A stretch of DNA of 63,685 nucleotides, counting the filler, from Hyphochytrium catenoides (taxonomy: Eukaryota > Protista > Hyphochytriomycota): assembly GCA_900088475.1 (NCBI GenBank). It is 7 parts of 7 records of this genome, joined end to end, with 100 filler letters (N's around TTAATTAATTAA, not from the genome) between each part and the next. Parts side by side here need not be neighbours in the genome. Positions count along the whole stretch, not along the records: positions 1 to 13,690 come from FLMG01003265.1; 6 more parts are not named here. One strand, 5' to 3'. Below, piece after piece: positions 4,285-10,342 of this stretch. Every line of letters begins with the position of its first letter. Position 1 is the first letter of the stretch. A model generated the notes under the pieces. The model did not search any database. It saw only the letters and a list, made by a program, of their open reading frames with translations, and was not told where the DNA came from. A program made the translations under genes and the position numbers.

Positions 4285-5929
4285 GGAGACGAGACACTTA
4301 TTCAATTCTCGCTGCTGCCAGGGACAATTTCTGTCTCTCTTCCCGTCGTGGTTGGTCTCTCCTTTGTCTTTCTCCTCTCCTTTTCTCTCTCGTTCTCTCT
4401 CACTCCTAAAGGCTCAGTTCTGTTATCGTGTCCCGCTCTCCTCTTCTTCCTCGCACCTCTTGCATCACTTGGGTCGTTCGCCTTCGGCTGTGTAATGATT
4501 ATAACGTTATTCCTATTTTTTGGACTGAAAGAGACAAGATGTTGAAGTGCTGCGTGCTGTCTCGCAGATTTTGTCCCTGTGAGATGCTTCTTCTTCGTAG
4601 CCTGCTTTCTTCTTTCACACCCTCTTTCTCTGTTACTTTCTTACTCTCTCCTTCTCTCCGTCTCCTAAAATTCTCTCACCTCCCCCTCCCGCTCTCTCTC
4701 TCTCATTTCTCTCATCCGCCTCTCGCTCTCTTCCACTTCCCTAAAAGACCCTTCTTCTCTTAATATATGAGGAAGAAAAGAACATGAAAGATCCAGCTTG
4801 TTATGTATCACCACTAATCAGGAAGAGGGCGAAGTGGCCCCAAGGGCAATGATAACGCAAGTGCCAAGCCCTCGTCTAACCCTGAGCCGATGCGCCACAT
4901 TAAACAAGGCAAAGCAGCAGCGCCTTCGAGAGGACACGATGTTGAGACTGAGTCCTCCACGCCCATATCCCGGGGCGCACTATTAAGCAAAGGAGTCAAT
5001 CGGCGAAGCAAACTGAAGAAGAAGAGACAAAAGCATGGTGCCAAAGGATGTACCCAATCATCGAGCAAGCAGCCAGAAGACAGCATCGAGGGCGCTCAAT
5101 CCATTCTTCTCCGGGACGGAAGTAGAGGACGATAATAACCTTGAGGCCAGTATCCCATCATTGATAGAGGAATAATAAGGAGGGGCTTGACTTGACGGCA
5201 GCATCTGAGCCCTGACTTGTCGCGCTGACATCTCTAGAAGAAGGAGAAGCAGAGGAGAAGGAGGAGAGAGAGAGATGGCCAAGAAGTGCAGTCGCGGGAG
5301 GACTTCGAATGATTCCGATTTGTAACGGACGGCCGGCCCCGTCAGACCTCCCCCTGATGTAGTGGGCACTTAGTTTGTTAGTTAGGGTAACAATAGGTAA
5401 GGGAGCACTTTACACGCACCTTTGTTCAGGCTCTTAAGTGATAGTTCTCTTTTGATAGAAACGTCCCTTCTCTTCTTTCCTTGTGCTCCCTTCCTCGTCC
5501 TCCATCATCAGCTGGACCATCTGGAGGCCACCAACATCTGAGGAAGATGAGAAGTGGCACACACAGATGCAATGGCAAACACATAGCCTCACAAGTCTCT
5601 GTCTCTTCGGTGATTATCCTTAGTAGCCATCCACTGACACAAGCTTTAGTCTAACTCACAGACGCTGGAAGGAGATCAGCCTAGTTAGAGGATCAAACGC
5701 ACATTACAGCCTAGATTTGCTCATAGGTAATATTCCATCATGTTCAAACCCATCTCTCTTTCGTGCCTGATGGTCAAATAACACTGTTTACAATTAGCCT
5801 ACCCGTCCCCGTTTGCCCATGCTTAATATATAGAAATGCTTTAGGGGGGTTCGCCTACCCACTTTTGGAGGTTACATCTGCGTCAGCATTTGGAGTAATG
5901 CACCATGATCCTACCGAGTACCTCTTCTC

Positions 5930-5965
<36 letters not shown>

Positions 5966-6793
5966 TCTCTCTCTCTCTCTCTCCCCCCTTTCTCTCGCTG
6001 TGTCCTCTCTATTCGTTCTTCCCCTTCTCCCTCTCTGTCTCACTCTCTTCTTTCTCTCTCATGTCTCTCTCTCTCTCATCAAAGTGATGCCAATGACCCG
6101 ACAAGGGCTTCCCTGGGACCCCCCTCCTTTCTCTCTCTTTTTCTCTCTCTGTCTCTCTCTCTCCCTCACTCTCATCTCTATCTCTCTCTCTTTTCCCATT
6201 CCTACTTCTGCGTAGGGCTACCTCCTCCTACTAGATATCCCATCACACGTCTTCTTCTTCTTTCCGTGGTGGTCCCCTGTCTTCTCTGTCGTGGGTCCCA
6301 TGGCATCTACTACTGGCACTACTTCGGGTCCAACCCTTCTCTCTAGCGCGATGGCAGACCAAAGCATGGCACCACTGGCCCAGCCCTTCCTTCCCAACGA
6401 ACGAGCAGCCCTGTCTCTCTCTGGGGACTGGACAACTGCCAGGCCAGCACGCAGCCGCCTCCAATTGTCACACTCAAACCTCGATCATCCTCATCGTGTG
6501 CTTATCAAGCCTTCACCTGTGCAAGAAGGTGGATGTACTCAGTCATTCAACCTGTTAGCTGGGCAGAAGGAGAAGGGAAACGATCTCAATAGGTCGCACG
6601 GCTTGCGCCGTTCAACGGCTTAGAGTCTGCCGAGTCTCTGGCCAGCCGCAGAGTCCATCCATAGGTGACAGGACCGTAGTATAAGGACACTGCGAGCGGT
6701 TGAGCTTAAGGCAAAGAGCCGGTCTTCGGCTCCTCAGTCAGGCAAACGCTACGCGCCGCACGGCAGTAGAAGCTCAGCGAGCTTTGGTTCACG

Positions 6794-9700
6794 ATGCAGG
6801 CCATCAGCGCTCTCCACTTATGTTTCCTACTACTGCTGCTTATCAGTGGATGGGCGGAAGAGAGAGGAAGCAGCGCAGCTAGTCTTCCGCCCAGCGTGAC
6901 CTTACGAGGTGCAGGAAGCTTAATGTGCGACCGGCTGTTCCGGTCCTTGCACTTAGCCTTTGAGCAGCATACTCTCATGAGTATGGAAGAGGCACTAGCT
7001 ACGAATGCCACGCTGCCGCCGTTTGAGTCTGTCTCTATCGCTTACGATACGAGAGGCTCTGACTCAGCCNNNNNNNNNNNNNNNNNNNNNNNNNNNNNNN
7101 NNNNNNNNNNNNCCTTAGCGGCAAGTGCCATCGCGCCAATCTATAACGTACGCGGGCTATCCGCGCCGTTAATCCTCTCTCGTGAGGTGCTTGCAAAGAT
7201 CTTCCTAGGAGACATTGAATGGTAAGTCTCCTCCTTCTTCTCCTCCTCATAGTAGAAGAGCTTACGAGCTTATCGATGTCCATCTTCTTTTTTCAGGTGG
7301 AATGATGGAGCCATTGCCTTGCTCAATCCTGCCGCCAGCCTTCCTGCAGAGAAAATCAAGGTGGTTGTCCCGATGGAGCCTGCGGGCACCACGAAGATCT
7401 TTACGAGCAACCTGGCAAGCTTCTACGGAGCGTTCGCGTCCCGGGTGGGCAGTGCGGAAGAGCTGCCAGATTGGTGCGAAGGCGTGACAACGGGCGTAGA
7501 CAACTCCACGATCCACTTTGGATTTAACCGGCACATCTGTCAGAAAGCTGGCAGAAGCTGGGAACACTATCGTGCCCACGGTGTTGAGGGCATTGAGATC
7601 GCGGTAAGAAGAAGAGAAAGAAAAGAAGAAGAAAAGAGCTCTCTTCTTCCTCGCTGCTAACATATTGTCTGCCTCTCTCCGTGGGCACAGGTCAAGATTC
7701 TCGACTTCTCTATCTCCTTTATGGCGCTGAGTGAGGCCAACGGACGCGGCTTAGCTGCTGCTCACTTGTATAACAGGCAAAATGTCCTCGTCCAGCCAAA
7801 CAGTACGTCTCTGCAGTACAGCTTGCTAAGGACGGAAGCCATGTACGCTGGTGTCTCATCAAACTCAAGCTTGGAAGATATCCTTCTGGACACGGAGGCA
7901 ACGCTCGGTTGGCCCATCGCTGGATTCAGCTACTTCTTGCTTCGCCGCCTCACGCACACACAGGGTTGCTTGGCTCGCGCTGCGCTGCTGACCTATCTAA
8001 AGTGGTTCTACGAGTCTGACGCGGTCGCGACTCAAGTGGAGAGCGCCGGCTTCGTTCCCTTTTCTCGATTCACTCGGCTGATGATCAGCAACTTACTCAC
8101 TAAGGCCATTCTTTGTGTCCCTGCTTGCGATGGATCATCCGCTAAGCCCTGCGACTGCCGTGCAGATCCCACGCGCTGCATGGCACCAGATGTCTCACAG
8201 CAAAGAGCTCAGAGCACGCTAGCGATCAGTTACCCAGCGTCCATTGAGGAGCTAGCGCAAAAGCTCTTCTCCATCTATGGGCAAAAGCTATTAACTGATG
8301 TCCCTGCCTTTGAACACCGACCAAGGAGCTTGAACATATCGACGCTCTTCGTGGTGAGAGCGTGGGATGAGCTGCAGAGCGATGCAACTTTGACGGCCAT
8401 GGTCATGCCGTCAAACGTGCTGCAGCTCCAACTTCAAACAGCGGCACAGAGCCAACAGGAAGCTGCAGCAGCAGCTATTAACTCCATCGTTGTTGTTCCC
8501 TTCCTGGGCGTTCCTCTTGGCCTCGTGTACAACCTAGGCAATGCCGTGACAGACCTGACGCTGACCATCCAGGTCGTTGGCAAAATCTTAAGCGGGCAGA
8601 TCCGGAAGTGGTCCCATCCTGAGATCAAGGAGCTTAACCCTGGATCTCCCTTGCCGGACGTGACCATTGCCGTGCTCTGGAATGCTGAGGAGGATCTCCT
8701 CATCCCTGCCTTTGCAGCCTCGTGGCTGTCAGCAGTGGACTCAGACACCGCGAACAAGCTGAGCACGTTTAGTCAACTTTCTAAGCTGACAGACGCTGGC
8801 GTCTCAGCCTATCGTGCTGCTAGTCAAGATGAACTTGTCTCCTTTGTCACTGGCATCGAGGGTTCGTTTGGACTCATTATGTCAAGCGGAGGAAGGACCG
8901 CGCGCACCGCCAACTTGCGCCTTAGCGATGGGTCGGTGGTCGGCTTGGACGCCGCCAATATTCAGCAATGCTACCGCTTAGCTGCTCACTCTAGCTCTTA
9001 CCGCGTGGGCCGCTATATCTCTAGCCTTGTGACCGCTTCATCAGCTGCAGAACAGGCCACATCCTGCTGGCCGCTCATCTTGGGCATGGACCTCATCACC
9101 CGCCGCGAGTTCCCTGCCGGGCAGTCAAGCAAGGCATTAGCGATGGCCCAGCTCATGGACTGGCTAGTGAACGATCCCATGCTCACGCGCATCGGAGCCG
9201 CCACGGGCGTTGCCACGGTCTTTGAGGGAACAGTCAACAGCTCTTCAAGGATCATACGAGAGATACGGCATAACGGCTTCTCCGTGCTAGATCCTGAGAA
9301 GCCTTGCTCTCGAGCTGACATGGCCTTCAATCTATCAGCGTGCCACTCTGCGACAGGGACGATGACGGCGTCTTTCTATTGGAAAGACGGCGATGAACGC
9401 TGGTGCTTGGGAGGCGAGAGCTTACCTGAAGCCGTGGAAGTGGACTGTGATCACGTCATGCCGTCGTCTACGAGCGGAATCTTCCTCATTGTCTTCTCTC
9501 TTCTTGGCATGATCGTTGTTGTCGGTGTTACCGTGTGGACCGTCATCAATCGAACGCGGAGGATCATTATCATCTCGCAGAAGCTCTTTCTCTTTATCTT
9601 TCTATGCGGAGGCATAGCTCTAAACCTGACAGCGATGACTCTTATTGGAGAAAACGCCGAGGTTCTCTGTGGACTACGGCCAACGCTCATCTCTCTCTCG

Positions 9701-10342
9701 TTCTCGACGATGTTCGCGCCGCTTCTGATGAAGTTGAAGCGCGTGGATAGACTGTTTAACAATCCGAAGCTGCGCAAGGTGAAGATCTCAAACTTGCAAG
9801 TGGTTCGAGAGTCTTTGTCCATCATCCTGGTCGATGTTCTGCTTCTTATCCTCTGGATGGCGCTGGACAACTCACAGCTGGAGACTGTGGCAGAAGAAGT
9901 GAACGGAGTTGGCAACGTTGACCGCAGAATGTGCTCGTTTGGCTCTAGAGGATACTTCACGGCGGTGATTGTCTGGAAGTTTATTATCCTTCTTATCGGT
10001 GTCATTCTCTCCGTGAAGACCTGGAACGTAGACAGTGAGTACGCCGAGGCGCGGCATCTGGCGTTTGCTCTCTACAATGCGTTCCTCATGGGTGGCCTCA
10101 CCTTGACGCTTGTGCTGCTGATGGATATTTCCTATCAGTTGGCAGTCTTCCTTGCAGGCCTGACGTTCATCATGATCTCTACCATCTCCGTGGCTGCTGT
10201 CATGGGCCCCAAGATCTATCATGTCTTCAAATTTCCTCAGTCAGAGCTTAGTAAAAAGACCTCAGCGGAAGTCGCTGCTGCTACTGCTGGTGGAGGTGGA
10301 GGCGGAGCAAAGAACAATAGCGTTGTGCCCTCTCCCTCTTAG
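6794..10342 (+). CDS. Class C (7tm_3, GABA-B/mGluR-like) GPCR with signal peptide, two tandem PstS-like (periplasmic binding protein type II) domains and a Cys-rich linker; about 1130 aa
   Basis: Exons 6794-7221 (contains N gap 7070-7112), 7297-7603 and 7691-10342, with GT-AG introns and consistent phases. The N-terminus is hydrophobic (LCFLLLLLISGWA). PstS motifs: LRGAGS, PIYNV...LILSREVLAKIFLGDIEWWNDGAIALLNP, AGTT.IFTSNL, WPIAGFSYFLL, YLKWFY. Second copy: LVYNL...LTLTIQVVGKILSGQIRKWSHPEIKELNPGSPLP, CWPLI. Seven hydrophobic segments at about 9470-10225 carry class C signatures MKLKRVDRLF, VKTWNVDSEYAEARHLAFALYN and GPKIY. Confidence 0.9.

Follow-up and report, generated by a model that had tools for sequence, protein, structure and literature searches.

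A divergent predicted class C G protein-coupled receptor of Hyphochytrium catenoides with tandem PstS-like ectodomains and an apparently remodelled distal phosphate site

Fusions of bacterial-type binding domains to the seven-transmembrane domain (7TM) of G protein-coupled receptors (GPCRs) belonging to class C, the 7tm_3 family of Pfam, have been described before. The combination of PBP_like_2 and 7tm_3 was recorded for Spizellomyces punctatus SPPG_06488 (Krishnan et al., 2012; PMC3251606), and fusions of OpuAC, LysR_substrate and SBP_bac_1 to 7tm_3 are reported for Allomyces (PMC3251606). In Plasmodiophora, seven 7tm3 fusions with solute-binding protein (SBP) or PBP_like_2 domains were found, whose single coding regions were backed by transcript data; the authors interpreted them as transporters of a new kind and took phosphate as the substrate of four (Rolfe et al., 2016; PMC4815078). 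In anaerobic gut fungi, type II SBP domains are present in about half of the class C GPCRs (Seppala et al., 2016; PMC5168858), PBP_like_2 is among the domain abbreviations of a GPCR survey of Amoebozoa (PMC10445921), and CaSR, a class C receptor, can respond to phosphate, via its type I flytrap (PMC6795806). Here we describe a three-exon gene on the + strand of Hyphochytrium catenoides (assembly GCA_900088475.1), located at positions 6794-10342, with its ATG at 6794, of a window of 63,685 nucleotides made of 7 joined parts of this genome. The gene was read directly from the sequence and encodes, in this order, a putative signal peptide, two successive PstS-like domains (1 and 2), a short stalk with Cys residues and a 7TM of class C. 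It adds a new and divergent member to a family which is already known, though uncharacterised, and the architecture itself is not new. The reading that we favour, with moderate confidence, is that of a divergent tandem-PstS class C GPCR whose distal ligand site has been remodelled, either for a changed ligand or as a ligand-blind or modulatory subunit.

The order of parts, the degenerate domain 2 and a length of about 1000-1150 aa are common to this protein, SPPG_06488, PBRA_005806 with its paralogues and proteins of Heterosigma, Mallomonas and Batrachochytrium. However, the phosphate site of domain 1 is complete in PBRA_005806 and in about half of the other relatives, whereas it is substituted in the query. 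As in the type II SBP GPCRs of gut fungi and the Allomyces fusions, the place of the flytrap on 7tm_3 is taken by a type II binding protein of bacterial type, but the ectodomains of those proteins resemble sugar or osmolyte binders and not PstS, and the tandem arrangement is unreported for them. The comparison with characterised class C GPCRs gives a large bilobed ectodomain N-terminal to the 7TM in both cases, and the fold of the query 7TM is that of GABA-B1/B2, mGluRs, CaSR, T1Rs and GPR156/158 (Z 28-30, root mean square deviation (rmsd) about 2 Å, hallmark residues present). Unlike in those receptors, the ectodomain is of type II (PstS) instead of type I and consists of two tandem clamshells, the NCD3G nine-Cys domain is missing and the 7TM is followed by a very short tail of about 30 aa. 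Domain 2 has the type II clamshell fold of bacterial PstS (1IXH/1PBP, 2Z22, 1PC3) over its whole length; nevertheless, bacterial PstS is a free protein which docks on PstCA, while the PstS-like domains of the query stand in tandem and are fused to a 7TM.

The PstS character of the ectodomain was studied by fold for domain 2 and by sequence only for domain 1. An AlphaFold2 model of exon 3 was built with 31 relatives (mean predicted local distance difference test score, pLDDT, 76.5), and in this model domain 2 (exon-3 aa 174-533, nt 8204-9289) was superposed on residues 1-321 of E. coli PstS 1pbp with a VIA Z of 27 (312 aligned residues, rmsd 3.3 Å) and on M. tuberculosis PstS-1 with a Z of 27.5. 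Foldseek gave TM values, taken by target, of 0.67-0.74 against PstS. By sequence, domain 2 matched PstS of the PDB (E 6e-8) and TIGR00975 (E 3e-14). Domain 1 (approximately 6893-8116, spliced) obtained 196 bits against an ad hoc hidden Markov model (HMM) built from single-domain PstS-like hits, and exon 2 alone was recognised by PDB PstS (E 5e-6) and TIGR00975 (E 2.5e-9). In NCBIfam the protein matched TIGR00975 and NF008171, both equivalog models of PstS, and nothing else. The scores were nevertheless low: PBP_like_2 (PF12849) of Pfam reached 23.6 bits on exon 3, below its cut-off of 27, and TIGR00975, with a cut-off of 205, gave 52.8 for domain 2 and 36.7 and 23.5 for domain 1, which was scored as pieces. 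Pfam also yielded no match on the short exon pieces, although NCBIfam and the PDB sequence search recognised them. Of the profile matches expected in the first-pass annotation, 7tm_3 and the PstS models were found and the Pfam cut-off for PBP_like_2 was not reached; its proposal that two PstS-type (type II) domains take the place of the type I flytrap was borne out. Both ectodomains were thus shown to be PstS homologues, domain 2 with the complete PstS fold. The helix motif K-W-N-D-P-x-I-x-x-L-N-P is common to both domains and to PstS. In addition, exon 2 contains a Cys-containing insertion of about 35 residues (7455-7590), which follows the PstS 'W-P' position and precedes the 'G-N-D-G' helix, and this insertion in the C-lobe of domain 1 is common only to the metagenomic relatives P0008 and P0013.

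In PstS, phosphate is coordinated by T10, F11 (NH), S38, D56, R135, S139, G140 and T141, with R135 donating two hydrogen bonds, and the anion is bound partly via backbone NH groups (structures such as 1IXH). With the residue numbering of E. coli / Y. pestis PstS, taken from printed alignments, the GAGATF loop of PstS corresponds to RGAGSLM in domain 1, where L replaces T10 and M replaces F11. The Y-x-x-x-G-S38 motif corresponds to YDTRGSDSA with its Ser retained, and the C-lobe loop reads VVVPMEPAGTT, with P at R135, E at D137 and A at S139, G140 and T141 being retained; D56 of domain 1 is unread. In domain 2 the residues at R135, D137, S139, G140 and T141 are N, E, D, L and L, respectively, whereas T10, F11, S38 and D56 were not aligned. 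The motif R-x-[DE]-x-[ST]-G-[TS] was absent from all 25 second domains of the 7TM-bearing relatives and present in 16 of their 29 first domains, and all checked site positions were retained in 11 of the 19 complete first domains. Moreover, P0006 and Plasmodiophora P0007 reached the TIGR00975 cut-off with their first domains (205.4 and 212.8 versus 205). Judged from these alignments, the gene belongs to the minority of the family with a remodelled distal site. As T10, R135 and S139 are changed in domain 1 and the C-lobe motif is lost in domain 2, phosphate is a weak guess for this member; the four substitutions of domain 1 (T10→L, R135→P, S139→A and D137→E) indicate that phosphate is most likely not bound here as PstS binds it. 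The phosphate-like ligand of the first-pass annotation is consequently plausible for the family, with its canonical first domains, and weak for this copy.

The best surviving alternative, which we nevertheless consider unlikely, is that the protein itself senses extracellular orthophosphate or a close oxyanion in its PstS-like cleft and signals via the 7TM to G proteins. It would agree with both domains matching PstS and nothing else, with the three site residues kept in domain 1 and the conservative change of D137, with the full site of many relatives and with the share of backbone NH groups in PstS binding. However, the Pro, Leu and Ala at R135, T10 and S139 of domain 1 and the lack of any C-lobe phosphate residue in domain 2 argue against it, as does the position of the query pieces far under the PstS equivalog cut-off which domain 1 of the canonical relatives passes.

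For the family as a whole, the complete domain 1 site of many relatives makes orthophosphate the most likely ancestral ligand, and these alignments suggest that phosphate is probably sensed via the distal domain, with the degenerate proximal domain as a relay. In the mechanism that we propose for this receptor, domain 1, the clamshell distal to the membrane, would capture a small solute in its cleft and would close or re-orient. This movement would be relayed via the degenerate proximal domain 2 and then the stalk with its Cys residues to the 7TM, probably in a dimeric state, after which the 7TM would activate a heterotrimeric G protein. The window itself contains no G-protein genes of the organism. 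A ligand-blind or modulatory subunit would pair with a canonical paralogue. Among known receptors, GABA-B2 pairs with GABA-B1 as a ligand-blind or modulatory partner, and T1R3 likewise works in a heterodimer; by analogy, we speculate that this member might be a partner subunit. A wider proposal, that tandem-PstS GPCRs are dedicated extracellular orthophosphate receptors of unicellular eukaryotes and this copy a ligand-blind or altered-specificity heterodimer partner, seems to us doubtful, and somewhat more so than direct orthophosphate sensing by this protein.

Several points weigh against the reading of a divergent receptor with a remodelled distal site. Our literature searches, which left most subscription journals outside, found no ligand or signalling study of any tandem-PstS/7tm_3 member; the earlier statement that no functionally characterised receptor of this architecture is known agrees with these searches. 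The idea of a ligand-blind partner requires a canonical paralogue in this genome. As S38, G140 and T141 are kept and backbone amides bind the anion, some anion binding may persist, and the unread part of domain 1 comprises D56 together with 24 further residues. Furthermore, there was no RNA run among the listed runs, so that splicing rests on homology, frame and polymorphism, and the deep nodes of the domain tree described below are weakly supported (0.13-0.26).

The membrane part gave 125.4 bits with 7tm_3 of Pfam (cut-off 33.5, E 4e-36, profile positions 5-251 of 251), and its PDB sequence matches were GABA-B2 (E 2e-11), mGlu5 (E 1e-10) and also GPR158. The model shows seven helices, at pLDDT values around 85-95, which were superposed on mGlu3 (9ii3) with a VIA Z of 30 and an rmsd of 2.2 Å over 267 residues. 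A Lys of transmembrane helix 3 (TM3), the acidic residue of TM6 (YAEAR) and the PKxY motif of TM7 (GPKIY) align with GABA-B2, and the family alignment shows little or no variation at C660 and C748 (the Cys of TM3 and of extracellular loop 2), K681 and P840. By predicted fold and hallmark residues this is unambiguously a genuine class C 7TM, as had been annotated. No ANF_receptor or NCD3G match was found in the protein with Pfam; the stalk is not an NCD3G nine-cysteine domain and gave just a weak ELAPOR1_C match (E 0.027). GABA-B and GPR156/158 also lack one or both of ANF_receptor and NCD3G, so their absence does not exclude class C membership. The seven N-x-S/T sequons of the ectodomain and the hydrophobic N-terminus are consistent with a secreted orientation.

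These data also bear on the possibility that the protein is a solute (phosphate) transporter whose binding domain hands the solute to a seven-helix permease. Bacterial PstS works for an ABC importer, and the Plasmodiophora homologues were annotated as a new class of transporters (PMC4815078). Nevertheless, the membrane part is of class C by sequence and by fold, with the Lys of TM3, the acidic residue of TM6 and PKxY of TM7 conserved, and no PstC/PstA-like permease or ATPase domain was detected in the protein with Pfam. Since, in addition, we know of no 7tm_3 protein which transports solutes, we regard this explanation as highly improbable.

A HMMER search with the ectodomain against 1.84 billion representatives gave 578 matches, the best of them just 28% identical, and no relative of at least 30% identity was present among these representatives; the query was 17-29% identical to the relatives aligned. 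The 7TM was present in 41 of the 157 fetched relatives, most of which have two PstS-like domains ahead of it, and which come from several eukaryotic supergroups. PBP_like_2 and 7tm_3 were verified with Pfam in six of the eight top matches, and the same layout was found in P0006, P0007, P0012, P0015 and others. The named sources are Plasmodiophora brassicae (PBRA_005806), Heterosigma akashiwo, Mallomonas annulata and Batrachochytrium salamandrivorans, to which transcriptomes and metagenomes are added. ESM Atlas contains clusters with 7tm_3 and PBP_like_2 from Chlorophyta, Discosea and Chytridiomycota, and clusters with this combination were also found in the AlphaFold database. A FastTree phylogeny separated all first domains cleanly from the second and third ones, with deep supports of 0.13-0.87. 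Domain 1 of the query lay among first domains, and domain 2 in a group of 35 domains that were all second or third ones; the single-domain PstS proteins adjoined the first domains. As the query domains group with the corresponding domains of the relatives, the tandem layout looks ancestral to the family and not recent in this lineage. The architecture cannot be called new, as PBP_like_2 with 7tm_3 was already recorded in 2012 and 2016, and the sharing of the layout by these 41 relatives across supergroups makes the ectodomain swap old and not an event of this lineage. A word-index homologue search, with an index so coarse at this identity that its blanks carry no weight, gave no match for exon 3 and only a PstS-kinase and an animal mGluR for the family alignment, and a metagenome scan for close relatives gave 90 pattern matches, none of which was confirmed.

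Other relatives combine PstS-like domains with different parts. P0158 (668 aa) has a protein kinase and PBP_like_2, P0004 (1360 aa) has two PstS-like domains with WWE and PARP, and P0001 of Chromosphaera perkinsii (2386 aa) has four PstS-like domains, three of them canonical, together with Ephrin_rec_like repeats, and its TRP-channel match is weak and falls under the threshold (27.7 bits versus a cut-off of 28.5). From these domain assignments, PstS-like ectodomains appear coupled to outputs other than a 7TM in eukaryotes.

The integrity of the gene was also studied. The end of domain 1, the whole of domain 2 and the 7TM lie within the one open exon of 2652 nt, in agreement with the fusion inside a single exon of about 2.65 kb that had been annotated, and the coding sequence (CDS) downstream of the assembly gap of exon 1 comprises 1021 aa without stops. 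Both exon junctions sit within PstS motifs and rejoin them without insertion or deletion: that of intron 1 joins IFLGDIEW to WNDGAIALLNP and that of intron 2 joins GVEGIEIA to VKILDFSISF, matching G-N-D-G-I-A-A-F-V-Q-R-L-P-G-A-I-G-Y of PstS. A 927-nt Logan contig of DNA run X1 covers 6675-7069 and 7113-7542 with 103 letters in between, against the 43 N of the window. These 103 letters and positions 7113-7114 make 105 nt, that is 35 codons, so the frame of the ATG is continuous with the downstream frame. The first 30 bridging letters, read from loose ends of runs X2 and X3, give KLALLAGASP without a stop, which extends YDTRGSDSA as the PstS helix Y-x-x-x-G-S-G-x-G-i-k-a-l-a-a-G, and a gap of 35 residues makes the spacing versus the PstS HMM correct to within one residue. 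The other 73 letters are unread, and the D56 motif of PstS (F-x-x-S-D) is expected there. Run X1 may be the assembly's own sample, and the bridging contig is then an independent assembly but not independent DNA. The number of residues hidden by the gap has to be corrected from about 14 to 35. The single spliced gene of the first-pass annotation, with GT-AG introns, a stop-free spliced CDS and the gap bridged in frame, was upheld, and its domain coordinates were right to within about 10 nt. A MAFFT alignment with the nominal gap of 43 nt (15 residues) had placed YDTRGSDSA on the D56 motif of PstS and so appeared to bear out a gap of this size, an assignment that was refuted by the bridging contig and by KLALLAGASP; YDTRGSDSA is the S38 loop.

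Set against the contigs from three runs of DNA of this species, the window had 33 listed coding differences, 28 of them at third codon positions. Twenty-seven were synonymous and six non-synonymous, while 76% of random changes in this CDS would be non-synonymous, which gives a binomial P of 7e-12. This synonymous excess extends over all exons; purifying selection acts on the gene, which is intact and continuous. Along the whole gene there were more than 60 single-base differences from the contigs, with four polymorphisms of intron 1 clustered at 7282-7290, and an in-frame 3-nt insertion (GAC) behind 8895 was present in minor contigs of all three DNA runs; the insertion and the single-base differences suggest two haplotypes or strains. 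The stop codon is TAG in the window, and one allele has TAA. An artefact of the gene model or assembly, or a decaying pseudogene, in which ectodomain and 7TM would not be one product, could be suspected as an assembly gap lies within the gene and the listed runs included none of RNA, but this is largely refuted, and hardly credible, given the open 2652-nt exon, the in-frame bridging by an independent contig assembly, the synonymous excess across exons and the same layout in dozens of relatives, some of them transcriptome-derived.

The sensing of external phosphate by eukaryotic cells is poorly understood, and among candidate sensors a GPCR bearing a bona fide PstS domain comes readily to mind. 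Members of the family occur widely: in chytrids, one of which is a pathogen of amphibians, in Plasmodiophora, the agent of clubroot, in raphidophytes that form blooms, in green algae and in amoebae. Although this gene alone is not the discovery of a new architecture, its comparison with the relatives leads to a testable rule for the family, by which the distal domain either is canonical or has been remodelled, while degeneration of the proximal domain is universal. This rule points trials of phosphate binding first to canonical members and not to this gene, and raises the possibility of ligand-blind partner subunits.

Table 1. Features of the receptor gene and positions in the window.
Feature	Positions	Strand	Description
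Exon 1, pre-gap part	6794-7069	+	ATG, N-terminus and start of PstS-like domain 1 (from ~6893)
Signal-peptide-like hydrophobic N-terminus	~6794-6862	+	
Assembly gap	7070-7112	none	43 N; actual content 103 letters
Exon 1, post-gap part	7113-7221	+	Frame from 7115; spans PstS strand AIAPIYNV to IFLGDIEW
Intron 1	7222-7296	+	75 nt; GTAAGT...CAG (GT at 7222, AG at 7296)
Exon 2	7297-7603	+	C-lobe of domain 1; holds WNDGAIALLNP and VVVPMEPAGTT
Intron 2	7604-7690	+	87 nt; GTAAGA...CAG (GT at 7604, AG at 7690)
Exon 3	7691-10342	+	2652 nt; terminates in TAG
Exon 3, first part	7691-8116	+	Remainder of PstS-like domain 1, to near-invariant Cys (exon-3 aa 142)
Inter-domain linker	8117-8203	+	4 Cys; pLDDT below 50
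PstS-like domain 2	8204-9289	+	Complete type II PstS fold in model; phosphate loop replaced
Stalk	9290-9442	+	~50 aa, 4 Cys, short beta strands
Class C seven-transmembrane domain (7tm_3)	9443-10255	+	
Cytoplasmic tail	10256-10342	+	Short (~30 aa), disordered in model, Gly run; stop TAG 10340-10342

The stretch around the gene is eukaryotic DNA with about 50% G+C and rich in CT/GA microsatellites. Upstream, a 278-aa open reading frame (ORF) on the + strand (73-909) matched the Mutator-like transposase of Pfam PF20700 over about 100 residues (E 1.6e-7, 31 bits versus 26.5), and from this match it is probably the remnant of a Mutator-like element. Long intergenic CT/GA dinucleotide microsatellites were located at 736-819, 987-1077, 2073-2220, 2440-2651 and 5922-6191; such repeats yield spurious SLSLSL ORFs. 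A strong local GC and AT skew was observed at 2001-2500. Finally, a 253-nt contig of a rhizosphere metagenome (run X4) matched the 7TM region at 9624-9876 with three differences, which places the organism or a close relative in soil around roots.

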